DNA of 63,416 nt, filler included, from Pelomyxa schiedti (taxonomy: Eukaryota; Protista; Evosea): the NCBI GenBank assembly GCA_020536535.1. It is 13 parts of 13 records of this genome, joined end to end, with 100 filler letters (N's around TTAATTAATTAA, not from the genome) between each part and the next. Parts side by side here need not be neighbours in the genome. Positions count along the whole stretch, not along the records: positions 2,097 to 11,448 come from JAHLWZ010000534.1; 12 more parts are not named here. One strand, given 5' to 3'. The stretch's first letter is position 1. Every line of letters starts with the position of its first letter. This document shows positions 2,097 to 11,448 of the stretch, piece after piece. The notes under the pieces are model-generated. The model did not search any database. It was given only the letters and a program-made list of their open reading frames with translations, and was not told the DNA's origin. Both the position numbers and the translations under genes were made by a program.

Positions 2097-5079
2097 CCTC
2101 AGTGTCACTTCCTCCATGCCACTGGTGGCAAAGGTTGAAGGAGTGAGCAGTGGCAACCTCATGCATTTGCCGTCTGTCGTCCAGCCATGGATGTCCCTGT
2201 AGTTTGGTGCTCTGTCACCAAGTGGCCCCATGCACGGAATCACCCCGTAGGCTACAAGCTGGTCCGCTGTCATAAGGTGGGTGATAGATAGGTGCCACTC
2301 ATACACGCGATCACCAATGAGCTGTGTGGTGGCTATCACAGTTGACTCCCCGGATCGTCCTGGCCTCGGTTTGGTGACTGTTGACTTGTCATTTGTTGGT
2401 ATCACGAGGCTATTCCCACAGCAAGCTGTGTCCCACTCCCATGTTTCCTCTTGTGTTACCAGGGGGTTAGGGGGTTAGGTGAAGGAAATTGTTTGGAGAT
2501 TTTCACCCCAAAGAGAGTTCAGAATTCACACCATAACACAAAGTGGAAGAAGCCTTTTGGCCGGCAACTGTGATCGTCAACGTGTGAACTGCGTTGTTGA
2601 CTGCAGGTGGTACCGTGCATGTGATTTCAGTGTGTGGGNNNNNNNNNNNNNNNNNNNNNNNNNNNNNNNNNNNNNNNNNNNNNNNNNNNNNNNNNNNNNN
2701 NNNNNNNNNNNNNNNNNNNNNNNNNNNNNNNNNNNNNNCATAACACAAAGTGGAAGAAGCCTTTTGGCCGGCAACTGTGATCGTCAACGTGTGAACTGCG
2801 TTGTTGACTGCAGGTGGTACCGTGCATGTGATTTCAGTGTGTGGGCATGTAAGTTCGACGCTGCTACACATCACACCTGTTCCATTTGGGAATTAAACAA
2901 CTAAATAGTCCTTGAGATACCATTGACTGAGGCAGTGATTTCACTTGATGAGGAACCAAATCTGCGCCCTCTGATTTTAACCTCCCTGCTATTACAGGAA
3001 GCCTTAGATACACTGTGAATGCATGGTCCTGGATTTGATGTGAACTTCGCTTTAGGGGAAAAAAGAACATAGTAACCTGGAAAAGAGAACCTTGTGTCGT
3101 TCGGACTGTCAGCAGTGACACCAAACACAGAGAGGGACACTGGTAGGTCACTGCCCACGCCATAATCCGGCACAGTGAAAGTGAGAACAGAACCAGGAGT
3201 GACAATTTTCACGTTTGTGCACTCTGATTCACCAACATGCATTATAATGTCTTTGCTTGTTGCTGTTGCCGCCCACAACCCAGTTGCAGTTACACAGTCT
3301 TCTGCCACCGCGGCAGAACTTGTGGTATCTTTGATGCATTCAAGTACTGGCCCTTTATGCATTGTGTGTTTGTCAGATGCAAAAGAGCAACACATACCAG
3401 GGGAAACGAAGCACAGGTGAGGAATCTTTTCCTTTACCAGTTCGATGTCATGTGCGGAAATCCAAATTTTAGTTGTGCACGGTGATAGGTGTTCTGCCTT
3501 GCATTCAAGTTGCTATGAATTGACTGTTAAGCGCGCAAATCAAAAACAATAAGACCTTGAGGATTCCAGGTAACGCCTCACACAAGTCAGTGATCTTTTG
3601 GCCATTCCCACTTTTCAAGATTGCAGCACACTTCGACTTGTATTTCTCAATGTGCCCAAGCCCCGTATCAATGACATCCAATTGCTGTGACAAGGCACCA
3701 ACTGCGTGTGGTTAGTGAAAGAAGTAAGAATAATTGGGAAACACGCCTTTACAGGATGCAATTGCCTCAGAAGTCGAAATCAATTCCTCTTGCCTCCTTT
3801 GCAATCTTGAAATAATGACTGAGAATTCCTGTACAACTTTTTCTGCAAATTGGCTCTGATCCTTTGGTGGTGTTTATTGTTTGGGTGGTGGGTGGAAAAC
3901 ATAAACCAGCTTTATTCTCACACTGTCAGATTTGATGGAAGCAGCCAATGAATTCAAATCAGCTTCCAGTTTTGCGAGTTGTGCAAAAAAAGCTTTTGGG
4001 CTTGGAAGATGCTTATAAGACATGTCCTCCACTGATACAACATTGTGCCCCTTTTTTTCTGAAGTCATTCAATAATAAATAATGTACCAAAGAACCTTGT
4101 GAGAGGAATAGAAAACGCATCTTGAGCAAATTAATGTATCATCTGTTTGACAGAATACATCAAGTGGAAGCTGGTGACTTTCACACATTCTCACAGCTAT
4201 TACACCATTAAGAATAACGCACACAGTAGGATACAGAGTAATCAATGTAACTACATACTACTAAGTTCAACTTGAAGGGAGAACTTAACCTTCTGGGAAT
4301 TCCACAGGTACATAAATAGAACTAAGATCGGACTTGGCATGGGAGGACATCCAGGGTGTCCAGTGAGCCTTTGACCAACACGACTCGCAGAATAGCATCA
4401 CAGTCTTTCCCCCAGGTGATGCCTTTGTGCACTCAGCGCACGTGTACTTTGCTGCAACATCAGCATGCTCTGATGCCTTGCACATCACGCACGATTGAAC
4501 AGAAGCCACGCGAGCGGCCTTCCTCCTCCTCTTTGGACAAGTAGGTGTTGGGCTCAGTGGTATCTCGACCTCTTCTTCATCTTCTTCCACAATGACCTCT
4601 TCCTGTTCTTCATCTATCATCTCCTGCTTCACAACCACTGCCGACACAAGTGACTTATCGCTGAGGGGGGATAAGCTACACCCAGTGCCGTGATAAGCCT
4701 GTTGCTGTTGCTGTTGATTCTGCCGTTCCCGCCACAAGGTCCCCTCCTTTGCACACCCACACACGGAGCACCAAAACTCAACAACCGTTGTCATCGTCGC
4801 GGTGGGGGTGGCGGGTGGTGAGGCTTCCTCTCCCTCTCCCTCTGCCCCCTGCTGCTGCTGCTCCTCCCCATCCTGGTCGTGGTGGTGGTGGTGGCGGCGA
4901 TGGTGACACGCACCCGCTGCCGCCGTGGGGATGCCCCTCGAGAAAGTCACTATGGCGTCGCCGCACTCGCAGCACACAGGGTGCCCGCACGACGGGCACT
5001 CAAATGCCCAATGTGACCAAGGGGGCAGTGGGCCACAGTGGCACACCGAGCACCGTCGCCGCGGTCCGGTTTCGTTCAT
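2097..5079 (-). CDS. TRIM-like protein copy 1 (RING-Bbox1-Bbox2-CC-2xIPT/TIG-SPRY-like), multi-exon, 3' end cut by contig edge
   Basis: RING: CSVC..CGHPVCCEC..WCSVC. B-box1: CVMC..CAEC..FCESCWSKAH..SH. B-box2: CESHQLPLDVFCQTDDTLICSRCVFYSSHK/GHNVV. Coiled-coil exons follow. IPT/TIG: VGESECTNVKIVTPGSVLTFTVP and VKIRGRRFG..ITCTVPP. C-terminal beta-sandwich: WEWD..YEWHLSI..VAYGV. Confidence 0.8.
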
Positions 5080-5165
5080 CAATTTTGGCTACTTATTCTT
5101 GGAAGGTTTAACTACAAAAGCCAATGTACTTACACAGTGGCATGTACATGTTCCATTGCGGTCTT

Positions 5166-7937
5166 TCAATGCTTGGCAGGGGAGATCCTTACGGTATTGG
5201 GGTAGGAAATGCTGACGGCAGGATACAAGCCACTTGGCACATTTGCCACTGTTTCACGTTGTGTGTGGCCATCTGAGTACACCCACTTTGGCCACTTGGC
5301 AGTGAGCGTGAGTGTGCGCGGATCATACCTCAGTATCACTTGCTCTTTCCCCTCTGGCGTCCCTCTCACTCCTCCCACTGGCACCCGCAGCTGGTCGTTG
5401 TCTGTTGTCCATCCATACATGTCGCTGTACTGTAGCGCCTTGGTGTTGAGTGGCTTGGGCATCACGCCAAAGGCCACGAGCTTGCTTTGGTGGGGCTTAC
5501 CCCTGAGGCCAGAGATTGAGAGGTGCCACTCGTGCACGCGATCGCCAACTAGCTGCGTTGTGGCTATCACTGTTGAGTGGGTGTATGTCCTGGAACTGGC
5601 CGTGGACTTGCTCACTATGGACTTGTCATCTTTGTGTATGTCAAGGAACCCACCACAGCACGTTGTGTCCCACTCCCATGGGTCCTCTGTTTTTGGGCCA
5701 TTAGAGTTGACGTTTACTAGAATTGACACACCAAAAAACAAAGTGGAAGAAGCCTGTTGACCAGCAACTGTGACAGTCAAGGTGTGAACTGTATTGTCCT
5801 GTTTTGGTGGAACTGTGCATGTTACCTTGGTGTACGGGTGTATGACTTCAACATCGCTGCACAGCACTCCTGCATTTAAGCCTTAGGATGAAAAAGAAAA
5901 CTTTTCATCACACCATTGACTGAAACAGTGATTTCACTTGGCAAGGTACCAAACCTGTGTCCTGTGATCTTCACCTTCCTTTCATCACAGGTAGCCTCTG
6001 ATACCTTTGTTATCTCTGGTCCTGTTGTGTGTGATTGCCGAAGGAACAAAAGGTTTCACTGAAAAACCTGAGGATGAGAACCTTGTGTCATTTGGCCTGT
6101 CGGCAGTGACTCCAAACACGGAGAGTGATACCGGGAGGTTGTCACCCCCTGGTGGAGCAGTGAAAGTGAGAACCGAGCCAGGAGTGACAATGTTCACGTT
6201 TGTGCACTCAGATTCACCAACTCGCACTTGAATGTCTTGGTTTGTTGCTGTTGCTGGCCAGCAGCCATGTGCTGTGAAAGAGCCTTCTGCTGTTGTGGTT
6301 TCTTTGATGCATTCAAGCACCGGTCCTAACGTGGATTGCTTGTTTGTTTTCCAGAAAAGAATGCCGGCACACACCAGAAGAAACAAAACACAGCTCAGGA
6401 ATCTTGTCCTTCAGAGGCTTGATGTCATCTGTGGAAATCCAAATTTTTGTTGTGCTGGAGACATGTGTTCCTTTTTGCATTCAAATTGCTGTGTGGATTT
6501 GAACATTAAACACGGCCGAGAAAGATTGAACAAGAAAAAAATCACCTTGAGGATTCCAGGAAATGCCTCACACAAGCTTTTGATCTTGGGACCGTTACAG
6601 CTTTTCACGATTGCGGTGCACTTGGACTTATATTTCTCAATGTGCTCAAGTCCGGCTGAAAGGACTTCCAGTTGTTTTGACAATGTACAAACTTTGCCGA
6701 TAAGAGAAAAATGAAAGAAAAAACAATGAATGACAGAAGTACCTTTGGAGGATGCAATTGCCTCGGAGGCTGAAATTAATTCATCTTGCCTCATTTGTAG
6801 TAGTGAAATCATCTCAGCGAATTCATTTCGGACAGTCTCTTCAAATTGGCTCTGTTCCTTTTTGTTGTTGAGATGATTATTGATTTTGTTTGGAGTTGGG
6901 CAAGAAACCAGGTGTATCTTGGAAGTGTCCGATTTGATGGAAACGGCCAGCCTATTCAAATCGGATTCCAATTTCGAGAGTCGTGTACAGAATGTTTTTG
7001 GGCTTACCGAATTTTTACAATAACATGTGTCCTCCACAGATCCGACTGGGTGCCCCTTTTATTAAGTTACAAAACAAAAAACTGTGTTACAACCTTGTGG
7101 GAATCGAAAGCACATCTAGCACAAATAAATGTGCAATCTAATCTGCAGAACACATCAAGTGGAAGCTGGTGAACATCACATGTATTCGTGCCTGGTTTTT
7201 TCAGTAGGATTGTAAAAAAAAAAAAAAAAAAAAAAAGAAAGAATAGTGCCACCTAATTGACAGATGTAATCGTAGCCGGGAGCAGCGGCAGGATCGGACT
7301 TTGCGTGAGACGCCATCCAGGGGGCCCAGTGGGCCTTTGCCCAGCACGACTTGCAGTACAGCATCGGCATGCCTCCCCCCGACGCCTTGGTGCACTCCAC
7401 GCACATGTAGTTGGCCGCAACCCCGTCGGCCTTGCACGCCACGCACAGCGCCACTGCCCCCGGTACCCGTGGTGCCCCACGCCGCGGGGCCGGTTCCGCC
7501 GCTTCCCTCCCCCGCCTCCTCTTCGGACATGGTCCCCTCGGTTTGCCTGTGCCTTCGTCATCGTCATCGCCGTCACCATCATCATCGTCGTCATCATCAT
7601 CCTCTTCTTCTTCGCCCTTCACAATGTGCCCAACTTGTAGTTGGATTACGGTCGCGTCCCGGGCACACGCGCACGCGGGGCACCACATCTCGATTGTGGT
7701 CGGCGGGTCGCCCTCCTGCGGCTCGGGCGGATGCGCCGACGAGGTAGCGGACGCGGGGATGTCCCTCTTGAAGGTCGAGACGACGCCGCTGCACTCGTGG
7801 CACACGGGGTGCCCGCACGACGGGCGCACGGCCACGCACCCCGAGGCCGGTGGCGCGAGAGCGCCGTGCACGGGGCTGTGGCACACGGAGCAACGTGCGG
7901 GCGTGACGGTACGCGGCACCGACGGGCTGCTTGCCAT
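5166..7937 (-). pseudogene. TRIM-like protein copy 2, same architecture, with an apparent 1-nt frameshift near 6455
   Basis: Exon structure matches copy 1 and the SPRY-like domain is complete (..GLYPAVSISYPNTVRI). It reads 'cca gc aca aca' where copy 1 has 'ccg tgc aca act', giving a premature stop at 6411. This could be a sequencing error. Confidence 0.7.
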
Positions 7938-8049
7938 GTTTGGCTTCTCGGAAACAACGGTTGTTAGTCTGGTGATGGGACCAGTTCCGTGGTAATGAGG
8001 CACAATTTGGGGAGGGGGTCACTTTGAGGAGGAGCGGCGGAAAGGGGGG

Positions 8050-10857
8050 TTACGTCTGTGCTATCTTGACAGTGTTGTGGTTGTGAATGTTTACAGCAGG
8101 ATACAAACCCAGCGGGACGTTGTTCACTGTTGCGGTTGCGTTGTTGTGTCGCGGCCACGTTGCAGTGAGCGTGAGTGTGCGTGCGTCATACCGGAACATA
8201 ACATCCTCACTGCCCCCGCTGGCTTGGAACCTGGGTGTGGTGTCTACATTCCAGGAGTTACCAGATGTGCTCCAGCCGTACATGAGGCTGCAGGGGGTTG
8301 CATAGTTTTGGTCGAACGGCTTCGGTATGAGTCCGTAGGCAACCCATTGGCATCCAAGCGTTTGCTTGAGGTCAGAGATTGAGAGCTGCCACTCATACAC
8401 GCGGTCAGGATCAGAGAGCTGTGTGGTGGCTGTCACTGTCGATTGTGGGTGTTTGTGGGGGCTGGATACTGGCTTGCGCACCATTGATTTGTAATGTGGT
8501 GTGATGGCAAGGTGGTTACCGCAGCACCCTGTGTCCCACTCCCATGTTGTTGTATCTGTTTTGGTGAGGAAGTGATTGATGGGTTGAACAACAAACGGAA
8601 ACACACCAAAAAGCAGAGTGGATGAAACATGTTGACCGGCAACTGTGAGAGTCAGTGTTGCTTGGTTGGAGTTGTTGTCTCTGGGCTGTGGCACTGTGCA
8701 CGCGATGACAGTGTGTGGGTGTGTCACCTCTACGTTGAGGCACATTACTCCTGTGTGTTTTTGGAATCAGATAATCAGATGAATATCAATGGAGTGTAAC
8801 ACACCATTGACACACACTGTTATTTCACGGGGTGAGGTTCCAAACCCACGACCTGTGATTGTTACCCTCCCGCCTTGTCGAGGAACCCTTGTGACGTTGT
8901 GAATCTCTGGTCCTGTGTGTGCCTGTTGTGAGATTTCTTGTGAAAAGCACAACAAACCTGGGAATGAGAACCTCGTGTCATTTGGCCTGTGAGCAGGAGC
9001 CCCAAACACAGAGAGTGACACAGGGAGGTCACATCCAACACCACAATCTGGCAACGTGAAAGTGAGAACAGAACCAGGAGTGACAATGTTCACGTTTGTG
9101 CACTCTGATTCACCAACTCCCACTTGAATGTCTTGGTTCTTTGCCGGCAGTGCCCAGTGTCCACACAGGGCCACCAAACGTCCTCCTGTTCCTCTGGCGT
9201 CTGCTGTTGTTTCCTCCTTGATGCATTCAAGCACTGGTCCTGTGATTTTATTCAGATAATAAGCGGGGAAAGTGAAGCAACCAACCAGTTGAGATGTAAC
9301 AGAGGCCAGGAATCTTTGATTTGAAGGGTTCAATGTCATCAGTGCGACAACTCAAAGTTCCACTGACACAGGGTGTCAAGTTCTCTGGTTTGCATTCAAT
9401 TTGCTATTTTCCTTTGCGTAAGAGTGTGGGGATGTGTCCCCGCAAGTTAGGTCGTTGAAATAACAATTACCCTCAGGATGACAGTGATTGAATTACAAGA
9501 TTCGATGATTTTAAAGGGATCACCAGTCTTCAGAATTGCCTCAAACTTGGATTTGAAATTCGCAACGTGCATCACTCCCACTGTGATGCTCTCAAGTTGC
9601 TTTGACAACTCACATGCTGTTTTGTTAAAACAATGTCAAAAAAAAAAGTGAAAGAACTAGAGGACACACACTCTTGGAGGATGCAATTGACCTTGACAAC
9701 GAAAGCAGTTCCTCTTGTCTTCTTTGCAATCTCGAAATCATCTCATTGAATTCCCGGCTTACTTTTTCCTCAAACTCACTGTGAACCTTGTTGTTTGTAT
9801 TGAATTGGTTGAAAGAAAGCCATTTTCAAATGAAAAGAAACCTGTTTCACATTTGAGATCACCGGCTCAATGGACTTTGCACTCAAGCTCAAATCAGTTT
9901 GCAATTTGGTGAGTTTCTGCACAAAGGCCTCGACACTCGATTTCTTGGAGCTGCACAAGTCTTCCACAGTCGAAATGTTGTGGCCCTTCAATGCGAGATC
10001 AGCAAAATTGATCAGTCAAATGAACAAATGGAGGACCAAACAAACCTTGTGGGAAGATGAGAACGAGCATGTCGGGCAAATGAATGTGCCATCACTCTCA
10101 CAGAACAAGTCCAGTTGAAGCCGGTGCTTCTCACACATCATCCTTCCTGTTTTTTCATCAGACTAAAAAACAAATGAGAGAAGGATTGGATTACGTTCGG
10201 GTGCCGGCTCCACCACGGCCACAGGGTCACATTTCGCTGTGACACTGAACCAGGAGCCCAGTGTAAATTGTACCAACAAGATTCGCAGAACAACATCGGG
10301 GAACCCCCTCCCAGTGTCCTCGTGCACTCCCTGCACCAGTACTTGGCACTCACTCCCATAACTCCCATCGCTGTGCACTTGCTGCAACTCATCACAACGC
10401 CACTGGTGCTGTTGTTCGGTGTGGGCTTGGCTGTTGCATCTGCCGATGGTGGTGGCGAATCGTTGTGCGGCGTCAGTTGGCGCACTGTGGCGTCCCTTGT
10501 GGCCCCGCACACGCCGCACCACACTCGCAACGCGGCTGCCGACGTCGGCGAGTTGCGGTCCCCAGCCCCAGGAACACCGCCACCGCCGCCGGCAGTGCTA
10601 CTTCCACATTTCGTGGCCGCACCCTCACGCGAGACGGAGGATTGTGGGATGTCCCTCGAGAACGTGACGATTGCTTCGCTGCAATCGCCACACACCACGT
10701 GCCCACACCCTGGCTCAACAACGACATGGTGACCACCACCACGCTCCGACGACAACGCGTTGGGTTGTTGTTCGATTATGGGATCCCTGCACACACTGCA
10801 TCGTCTTTGTTGTTGTTGTTGGTGTGTTGGTGGTGCGGCGGTTGTCACCCCTGCCAT
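8050..10857 (-). pseudogene. TRIM-like protein copy 3, same architecture, with an apparent 1-nt frameshift near 10253
   Basis: RING CSVC..CGHVVCGDC..WCGVC; B-box2 CEKHRLQLDLFCESDGTFICPTCSFSSSHK; two IPT domains; SPRY-like end LGLYPAVNIHNHNTVKI. After HWAP the paralog-like sequence (WFSVTAKCDP) and the correct intron phase lie in a shifted frame. Confidence 0.7.
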
Positions 10858-11089
10858 CGATGCAACAATTTTATGTGAAAATCACTGTTCTGGTTGTAAA
10901 TCCTGGACACAGACCACACGGTACTTTGTACACTGTTCCACTGTCCAACTGAGGGAGACCATAGAAGTTTCTGAGCCCCTGAGCTGAGGAGATGATTACT
11001 ACATTGTGGGTCAAAGGCCACAGACCGAACATAATAAAAGAGAATTCTCCACACGCCTCTTCACGACCTCCGCGCAGCCCCGGAAAAAA

Positions 11090-11448
11090 ATGATTGATGG
11101 TGCCGGTGAGGAGCGGTATACCACAGCCAAATCGCAAGTCCTGGCCATCCTATGTTCTGCAGTTGGGTCGTTGAGTGCCCATAACTTTAGCACACAAAAC
11201 AAAACTGATGTAGAAGTGACGATACTTACAAAAAAAAACAAAATACAGACACACACGCAGTGGCAGCAGCGACGACGAAAGTGGCGACAACGAAGACGAC
11301 GTCCACATGGACGCGTGGAGGCCGACGACGCATCCCGTCCCATCATTGATTTCTTGGGTGCGCTCAGCTGATTTGTTCAGGGAGTGGGCTGAGAACTGGG
11401 TTCTGAGGCCTGACCAAGAGGCCGTGTTCTTGCCATTGAAGCACTCGC
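11090..11448 (+). CDS. 5' fragment of a lineage-expanded hypothetical protein family
   Basis: MIDGAGEERYTTAKSQVLAILCS followed by LFREWAENWVL, resembling 28129 (ARAQFVAFGCG..DFGRQWVV). Cut by the contig end. Confidence 0.45.

Follow-up and report, generated by a model that had tools for sequence, protein, structure and literature searches.

Three head-to-tail genes on the minus strand at positions 2097–10857 of the window analysed here, a stretch of 63,416 nucleotides (nt, filler included) from the anaerobic archamoeba Pelomyxa schiedti (GenBank assembly GCA_020536535.1), belong to a family of at least 30 copies that lie mostly in tandem arrays. Their products have the domain order C3HC4 RING-like finger, B-box1-like finger, B-box2, coiled coil, TIG1, TIG2 and SPRY, and both this architecture and the sequence homology of the B-box and coiled-coil regions argue that the family consists of TRIM-type RBCC (RING, B-box, coiled-coil) proteins. 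We consider it likely that the three genes, as members of this P. schiedti multigene family, encode dimeric RING E3 ligases whose SPRY loops would choose the target. Family members are already named automatically in GenBank as "TRIM38/41", but no description of the family was found in the literature searched, and the genome paper, which reports 7.43 introns per gene, mentions neither TRIM nor SPRY (PMC8887013).

Gene structure, transcription and domains of the three copies

The piece of the window under study (positions 2097–11448, 9352 nt) is contig C534 (JAHLWZ010000534.1) of a 52.4-Mb genome in 5337 contigs. An earlier note, made by reading the window by eye, had described three tandem paralogs with a shared exon layout, and this description held. 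Each copy is split into 10 exons by 9 introns whose positions correspond in a three-way alignment, the period is about 2.9–3.0 kb, and families of direct repeats are spaced 2866–3002 nt apart, with two further spacings of about 3230 nt that span an assembly gap. The layout given in the note required one amendment, in that the last open reading frame (ORF) conceals a further in-frame intron of 45 nt (5731–5687 in copy 2), so that the SPRY domain occupies an exon of its own. Introns of the three copies are 38–93 nt long and all are bounded by GT..AG except one GC..AG intron in copy 1, intron 4 (3702–3746), which follows exon 4. Each gene comprises about 775–800 codons. TIG1 corresponds to one exon, TIG2 to two and SPRY to one, all flanked by phase-1 introns. 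Coordinates are compiled in Table 1.

From 10237 copy 3 keeps an open, phase-consistent reading frame up to its stop, with all nine introns GT..AG. Its exons 2–10 correspond to the opening half of KAH3761308.1 ("tripartite motif-containing protein 38"), a GenBank model that merges copies 3 and 2 and is the best database match of the contig's products. ORFs located 5' of copy 3 (10874–11368) matched no Pfam family, and the GenBank start exons in that region look spurious. Exons 1–7 of copy 1 equal the GenBank partial model Pelo_6865 (P0045), and all exons present in this copy are open provided that the gap and one duplicated block are left out. The gap is the unmerged overlap of two contig ends that were scaffolded together, since the two 107-nt blocks beside it are 100% identical; once the gap and one block are removed, exon 9 measures 138 nt, the same as in copy 2, and runs in frame into exon 10. 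The block begins exactly at the last base of exon 9, which fits a break in the assembly graph where the intron sequences of near-identical paralogs or alleles begin to differ. The genome was assembled from pooled whole-genome-amplified single cells with Illumina and Nanopore reads, SPAdes --sc and P_RNA_scaffolder (PMC8887013), and we infer that the last of these steps made the gap.

Three single-cell RNA-seq runs and a DNA-like run come from one study; contigs of the RNA runs, placed on 5100–10990, served to assess transcription. One RNA contig (X1 record 1) equals copy 2 over 5127–6126 with 0 mismatches, and copy 2 is therefore transcribed and spliced. Seven GT..AG introns are spliced out between its 3' exons (6908–6858, 6742–6692, 6545–6489, 6374–6326, 6067–6022, 5913–5870 and 5731–5687), six of the joints being listed directly (as CT..AC on the plus strand, equal to GT..AG on the minus strand) and the seventh deduced from a loose end; splicing of the seven 3' exons is thus observed. 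The two remaining introns of copy 2 (7252–7192 and 7093–7056) were placed from their GT..AG borders, the reading frame and the GenBank model. Short RNA contigs also cover the 3' end of copy 3 (7974–8192 and 8280–8417).

Domains were searched exon by exon, with the public proteins P0043, P0042, P0006 and P0001 standing in for full-length family members. A phmmer search of the PDB with the intact 814-residue paralog P0043 (Pelo_6094) returned TRIM chains only at E ≤ 0.001. Residues 219–411 of P0043 align continuously to B-box1, B-box2 and the coiled coil of TRIM28 (E 7e-6), the protein also aligns to B-box2 and the coiled coil of TRIM72, TRIM3 and TRIM5, and the B-boxes of TRIM29, TRIM39, TRIM41 and TRIM5 are among its matches. 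In the window, B-box2 scores 27.6 bits against Pfam zf-B_box, above the cut-off of 24.1 (7070–7252, minus strand), and the match reaches 1.3e-11 in P0043. The coiled coil has a weak Pfam TRIM_CC match in P0003. When residues 262–470 of P0043 were modelled as a homodimer the score was 0.59, compared with 0.00 for the best of 3 controls, on a scale where 21 of 30 proteins solved as one-chain pairs, and none of 23 solved as single chains, attain the mark; the pass may, however, come from TRIM dimers solved earlier and known to the predictor. At least 91% of contacts are shared between runs, the partner has a predicted local distance difference test (pLDDT) value of at least 78, and the predicted contacts are antiparallel (343 with 394, and 336 with 401–405).

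All eight zinc ligands of the RING-like finger are invariant in nine paralogs of 39–44% identity, as are the flanking residues CSVC, CGH.VC..C and WC..C, while the loops between them are long and variable. Pfam RING families match five of the nine paralogs (best E 8.9e-6), and no other family is matched consistently. The pattern of the B-box1-like finger (C5-C/H-H2) was found in 22 window exon-1 ORFs and in 20 paralog loci, with matches to Pfam ANCHR-like_BBOX at E 7e-4 to 0.03; in copy 3 its last His is lost by a frame break. A basic motif, PKRRR(K/G), lies between an acidic low-complexity stretch and B-box1 in copy 2 (about 7470–7500) and copy 1 (about 4520–4550) and in several paralogs, and genes of the copy 3 type lack it; the motif is a possible nuclear localisation signal.

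Between the coiled coil and SPRY lie two IPT/TIG domains. TIG2 of the intact P0043 scores 40.4 bits against Pfam TIG (E 3e-10), and the TIG2 profile matches the IPT domain of Sec5 (0.007) and plexin-A4 (0.065). TIG1 is borderline when taken alone (Pfam E 4.3e-4), and its profile matched nothing significantly in the PDB; an hhalign comparison of the TIG1 and TIG2 profiles gave a probability of 82.6% (E 9.7e-6), which argues that TIG1 is homologous to TIG2. Neither COS nor FN3 families were detected by Pfam at E ≤ 1 on residues 310–470 of P0043 or on the TIG regions, nor was filamin at E ≤ 1 in the Pfam search of the TIG regions.

The C-terminal domain had no direct Pfam match, and is assigned from a model and from profiles. 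The AlphaFold2 (AF2) model of copy 2 exon 10, built with 39 sequences, has a pLDDT of 88.9 and a predicted TM-score (pTM) of 0.86; an earlier model of the whole last ORF with 10 paralogs reached a pLDDT of 49 and was unusable. All 50 Foldseek matches listed from the PDB are SPRY/B30.2 domains (probability 1.00, TMq 0.59–0.75), among them Ash2L, TRIM7, TRIM11, TRIM67, RanBP9/10, SPSB and BTN3A1. An expanded profile (A3) matched the SPRY domains of TRIM9 (6.3e-10), TRIM67 (2.9e-9) and HERC1 (1.7e-6) in the PDB, Pfam SPRY is found on the same residues in the intermediate relatives P0023 and P0026, and an ESM language-model search returned a SPRY cluster at 0.96. On this evidence the domain is a SPRY/B30.2 fold.

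The earlier note had read the same domain order from the DNA. Its terminal beta-sandwich, ending in LYPAV, is the one modelled here with a SPRY/ConA-like fold, and its two IPT/TIG modules were recovered, TIG2 above the Pfam cut-off and TIG1 through its match to the TIG2 profile. Its B-box2 likewise passed the Pfam cut-off and its coiled coil was found again, whereas the RING-like and B-box1-like fingers are read from invariant ligands or weaker profiles.

Table 1. Coordinates of the genes, domains and other features in the window
Feature	Position	Strand	Remarks
Copy 3	10857..8050	-	first in transcription direction; stop included
Copy 3, exons 1–5	10857..10195, 10146..10046, 9985..9842, 9786..9672, 9616..9471	-	
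Copy 3, exons 6–10	9403..9286, 9239..8958, 8912..8805, 8750..8607, 8555..8050	-	
Copy 2	7937..5166	-	stop included
Copy 2, exons 1–5	7937..7253, 7191..7094, 7055..6909, 6857..6743, 6691..6546	-	
Copy 2, exons 6–10	6488..6375, 6325..6068, 6021..5914, 5869..5732, 5686..5166	-	
Copy 1	5079..2097	-	truncated at contig edge; 3'-terminal 55 or so codons absent
Copy 1, exons 1–5	5079..4290, 4196..4096, 4050..3907, 3861..3747, 3701..3556	-	
Copy 1, exons 6–10	3512..3398, 3352..3077, 3028..2921, 2876..2846 plus 2638..2532 (exon 9), 2449..2097	-	
RING-like C3HC4 finger, copy 2	7671..7892	-	C-x2-C-x21-C-x-H-x2-C-x2-C-x36-C-x2-C
B-box1-like zinc finger, copy 2	7305..7445	-	C-x2-C..C-x2-C..C-x2-C-x3-H-x7-H
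B-box2, copy 2 (exon 2)	7094..7191	-	last His from start of exon 3
Coiled coil, copy 2 (exons 3–5)	6546..7055	-	P0043 equivalent aligns to TRIM coiled coils
TIG1, copy 2 (exon 7, phase 1-1)	6068..6325	-	Pfam TIG 20.6 bits, cut-off 20.9
TIG2, copy 2 (exons 8 and 9)	5732..6021	-	Pfam TIG on both halves; one intron inside domain
SPRY/B30.2 domain, copy 2 (exon 10)	5166..5686	-	172 residues and stop; WEWD..CCG at start, GLYPAV near end
Frame break, copy 3 exon 1	10237..10238	-	one base short, in codon of last B-box1 His
Frame break, copy 2 exon 6	6456..6457	-	CC in window, CCC in RNA contig
Assembly artefact	2532..2845		100 N (2639–2738) between identical 107-nt blocks 2532–2638 and 2739–2845
Dispersed repeat, about 102 nt	10976..11079		5' of copy 3, outside genes

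The family and its relatives

Genome-wide, about 34 places match the SPRY exon and 25 or more match exon 1, counts that are lower bounds and include some allelic places. At least 14 loci have both exons on one strand, with exon 1 lying 2.1–2.4 kb upstream of the SPRY exon. Arrays of two to four genes occur on contigs C760, C488, C665, C584, C1391 and C520, and the family is both large and clustered. Fragments on contigs C303, C4173, C2029 and C1156 are 94–98% identical to parts of copies 1–3, with synonymous divergence (dS) of 0.02–0.12, which suggests that they stem from a second haplotype, from the variant of another cell or from a very recent segmental duplication of the array. Over the last exon, one RNA contig carries the C303 version.

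The three copies agree best in TIG1 (67–74% identity), compared with 48–55% for SPRY and 35–49% for the RING region. Variation in SPRY sits in four loops (28–36, 61–68, 79–89 and 95–103), and entropy is 0.75 in the strands versus 1.44 elsewhere (p = 5e-7). Pairwise Nei-Gojobori ratios of nonsynonymous to synonymous substitution (dN/dS) for the SPRY exon are 0.28, 0.60, 0.62 and 0.30 in four close pairs with small counts and give no sign of positive selection, so that the description of these genes as fast-evolving was not sustained.

A profile of 19 Pelomyxa SPRY copies, searched against 1.84 billion representative proteins, matched 40 at E ≤ 0.001. Thirteen of the matches have E ≤ 1e-26, and all six of these that were looked up are from P. 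schiedti; weaker matches (5e-9 and above) include euglenid and metagenomic proteins, some with Pfam SPRY over the same residues. Close relatives were found in P. schiedti only, and a search with the annotated paralog P0006 gave the same result. In euglenid transcriptomes, RING–B-box–(TRIM_CC)–SPRY-like proteins are present in Urceolus (P0017), Jenningsia (P0018), Entosiphon (P0016 and P0047) and Ploeotia (P0029). To judge from these sequences, RBCC-SPRY proteins exist outside animals, and the independent assembly of the architecture in this amoeba, which the earlier note had proposed, finds no support, the nearest outside relatives of the SPRY domain being these euglenid RING–B-box–SPRY proteins.

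Among known systems, class I TRIMs (TRIM9, TRIM67 and MID1/2) resemble the Pelomyxa proteins in that a pair of B-boxes (the first of them B-box1-like in Pelomyxa) and a coiled coil are followed by an Ig-like beta-sandwich module and by SPRY at the C-terminus. The SPRY domains of TRIM9 and TRIM67 are the best PDB sequence matches of the expanded Pelomyxa profile, although the link to TRIM9 was seen solely after intermediate sequences had been added, and the nearest ESM Atlas cluster is TRIM9-like (score 0.84, a lead only). Class I proteins, however, have COS and one FN3 domain where the Pelomyxa proteins have two IPT/TIG domains and no detected COS, and class I genes are few and conserved, in contrast to a tandem family of 30 or more. 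To our knowledge, the standard TRIM classes hold no counterpart of an IPT/TIG pair between coiled coil and SPRY, and no paper joining "tripartite motif" and "TIG domain" was found, in agreement with the earlier note, which knew of no such class.

Class IV TRIMs (TRIM5, TRIM21, TRIM7 and the finTRIMs) resemble the Pelomyxa family in combining RBCC with SPRY/B30.2 and in their tandem clusters, lineage-specific expansion and variable SPRY loops, and the Pelomyxa SPRY fold matches the B30.2 domains of TRIM7 and TRIM11. As a rule they lack B-box1 and have nothing between coiled coil and B30.2, whereas the Pelomyxa proteins have both a B-box1-like finger and an intervening module; immune members of class IV are moreover defined by positive selection, of which the pairwise dN/dS values found none in Pelomyxa. 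The TRIM-NHL proteins and TRIM45 (classes VII and X; RBCC-filamin(-NHL)) also place an E-set Ig-like domain directly after the coiled coil, sponge and cnidarian clusters with B-box plus filamin are among the nearest ESM clusters, and P0043 matches the B-box–coiled-coil chain of TRIM3. The domain is filamin in those proteins, followed by NHL in the TRIM-NHL group, whereas that of Pelomyxa scores as IPT/TIG and the C-terminus is SPRY.

TRIM families have been held to be specific to animals, the one subfamily reported elsewhere being TRIM37-like (Marin 2012, PMC3503706), to which the single TRIM of Dictyostelium belongs (PMC5758549). TRIM37-like proteins (subfamily A, RING–B-box–MATH) are thus also TRIM-type proteins of Amoebozoa (PMC3503706; PMC5758549), but they carry MATH, which the Pelomyxa proteins lack in favour of other C-terminal modules, and Dictyostelium has one copy compared with 30 or more clustered genes. 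The euglenid proteins from Urceolus, Jenningsia and Entosiphon are the nearest relatives of the SPRY domain outside Pelomyxa (E 5e-9 to 5e-8 in the search of 1.84 billion proteins), in a comparison that covers the SPRY domain alone of proteins known from transcriptomes. Their RING and B-box pass or approach the Pfam cut-offs, and no TIG was detected in them.

A different domain combination is suggested by P0007 (KAH3731649.1, contig C1372), annotated as an "LRR-GTPase of the ROCO family", in which a leucine-rich repeat (LRR) ectodomain and a transmembrane-like stretch precede B-box1, B-box2, coiled coil, TIG and SPRY. A genuine LRR-TRIM fusion was rejected because the RING region is in the wrong frame, and P0007 is most likely two genes fused by annotation.

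Proposed function and alternatives

In the ligase reading that we favour, antiparallel dimers would form through the coiled coil, the RING would recruit ubiquitin-loaded E2, and the four variable loops of SPRY would bind the target. The two Ig-like TIG domains would space and orient SPRY, a part played by FN3 in class I TRIMs and by filamin in TRIM-NHL proteins. Several results weigh against this reading. The RING of the window copies lies below the Pfam cut-offs and carries loop inserts of 20–60 residues, the RING profile gave non-significant PDB matches (RNF4, MAT1 and TFB3; E 1–8), and an hhalign comparison with two euglenid RINGs was not significant (probability 23%). Profiles made from Pelomyxa SPRY sequences matched nothing in the PDB at E ≤ 10, and intermediates were needed for the link to PDB SPRY domains. 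No contig from the single-cell RNA runs covers exons 1–3, and the join of the RING to B-box2 rests on conserved linkage, reading frame and GenBank PASA/EVM models of paralogs. Copies 2 and 3, furthermore, are frame-broken as assembled.

The sub-threshold RING of the window copies, not significant against either the PDB or the euglenid RINGs, would also be expected of non-catalytic scaffolds or adaptors (for example autophagy receptors or cytoskeletal adaptors) in which the RING no longer binds E2 and the protein works through coiled-coil and B-box assembly and SPRY binding. Several animal TRIMs do act without ligase activity. That eight zinc ligands and their flanks have stayed invariant at about 40% identity nevertheless argues for a maintained zinc finger, as does the match of RING families, and of no other family consistently, to five of nine paralogs, and we regard a purely scaffolding role as quite unlikely. 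Acquisition of the family from an animal by horizontal transfer, with later expansion, is very improbable: RBCC-SPRY families are otherwise typical of animals (PMC3503706) and the expanded SPRY profile matches TRIM9 and TRIM67 best, but each gene has nine tiny introns of host type, the nearest outside relatives of SPRY are euglenid and metagenomic and not animal, no animal TRIM class is known to have IPT/TIG, and animal TRIMs are matched at very low identity (E about 1e-5 to 1e-6).

As a special case of the ligase reading, the family might consist of receptors for intracellular immunity or symbiont surveillance, which would tag bacteria, endosymbionts or viruses with ubiquitin, a speculation that we hold to be rather unlikely. 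A large, tandemly clustered and lineage-restricted family with possible pseudogenes, variable SPRY loops, and a SPRY domain more diverged than TIG1 among the three copies would all suit such a role, and animal RBCC-SPRY families of this genomic pattern, for example TRIM5 and the finTRIMs, are immune factors. The host, moreover, carries obligate prokaryotic endosymbionts (PMC10579272). On the other hand, the dN/dS values of the SPRY exon (0.28–0.62 in the four close pairs) give no domain-wide positive selection, the loops of any beta-sandwich vary more than its strands, and families of E3 adaptors expand for other reasons too. The fuller proposal, that 30 or more arrayed genes form a previously undescribed TRIM class (RING–B-box1–B-box2–coiled coil–IPT/TIG x2–SPRY) serving as a cell-autonomous receptor repertoire for bacteria, viruses and endosymbionts, is unlikely as a whole. 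If it and the euglenid proteins were taken together, RBCC-SPRY ligases and their use in surveillance would be older than animals or would have arisen repeatedly. A clustered RBCC-SPRY family in an archamoeba would in itself extend the TRIM-type architecture and its pattern of expansion beyond animals, and in a host with obligate bacterial and archaeal symbionts it would offer a set of genes with which to study how a protist distinguishes between food, symbionts and pathogens.

Two copies of the array carry frame breaks. In copy 3, CACA-GCG stands against CACATGTG in contigs C2777, C760 and C1637 in a DNA alignment with three paralogs, and the missing base puts exon 1, translated from its ATG, in a different frame from exon 2. 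In copy 2, an extra G behind 6456 is present in RNA run X2 and absent from the DNA-like run X4; exons 7–10 are open solely in the shifted frame, and copy 1 is contiguous at the equivalent site. The RNA contig with the extra base has 27 differences from copy 2 in the last exon and so probably derives from the near-identical C303 allele or paralog. Both breaks are mirrored in KAH3761308.1, which starts copy 3 at B-box2 via dubious upstream exons and then runs on into copy 2, traversing its TIG1 out of frame. The array may thus include transcribed pseudogenes, which are expected in a family gaining and losing copies, or it may carry errors of the draft assembly.

That at least one break is real, leaving a partly decayed array with transcribed pseudogenes and the function in intact paralogs elsewhere (such as Pelo_6094 on C488), falls somewhat short of being the more probable outcome. 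The base missing from copy 3 is kept in three paralogs at a site that is not a homopolymer, copy 2 is one base short of an RNA contig, and run X4 agrees with the window. X4, however, is probably the source data of the assembly and hence not independent, and the assembly pools whole-genome-amplified single cells and Nanopore reads (PMC8887013). The copy 2 site, in addition, is a CC/CCC run in a gene that is transcribed and correctly spliced (X1 record 1), and the RNA contig bearing the extra base probably comes from the C303 allele or paralog. For the public annotation, the present models replace a fused two-gene model and a partial model and supply a SPRY domain that had gone unrecognised.

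Other features of the array

The spacers from stop codon to next ATG are only 112 nt (7938–8049) and 86 nt (5080–5165) long, and RNA contigs on copy 3 extend to 7974, that is, to 37 nt short of the copy 2 ATG. Neighbouring copies may share very short promoters or be co-transcribed. The GC content of exon 1 is 0.58–0.64 (regions 7250–8000, 10150–10860 and 4290–5080) versus 0.40–0.47 in the rest of the gene, and low-complexity runs of Pro, Ala, Gly and acidic residues are frequent in this exon.

Intron 9 of copy 1 (2450–2531) is 82 nt long, compared with 45–51 nt in the other copies, and contains a short TTAGGGGG-like repeat; most of it is missing from the C1156 version. The dispersed repeat upstream of copy 3 occurs in at least 20 copies on other contigs at about 76–98% identity, does not occur in the corresponding flank on C760, which is 97% identical apart from it, and is bordered by 9-nt near-direct repeats, AGCCCCTGA and AGCCCCGGA. 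A small element of the short interspersed nuclear element (SINE) or miniature inverted-repeat transposable element (MITE) kind appears to have inserted here recently.

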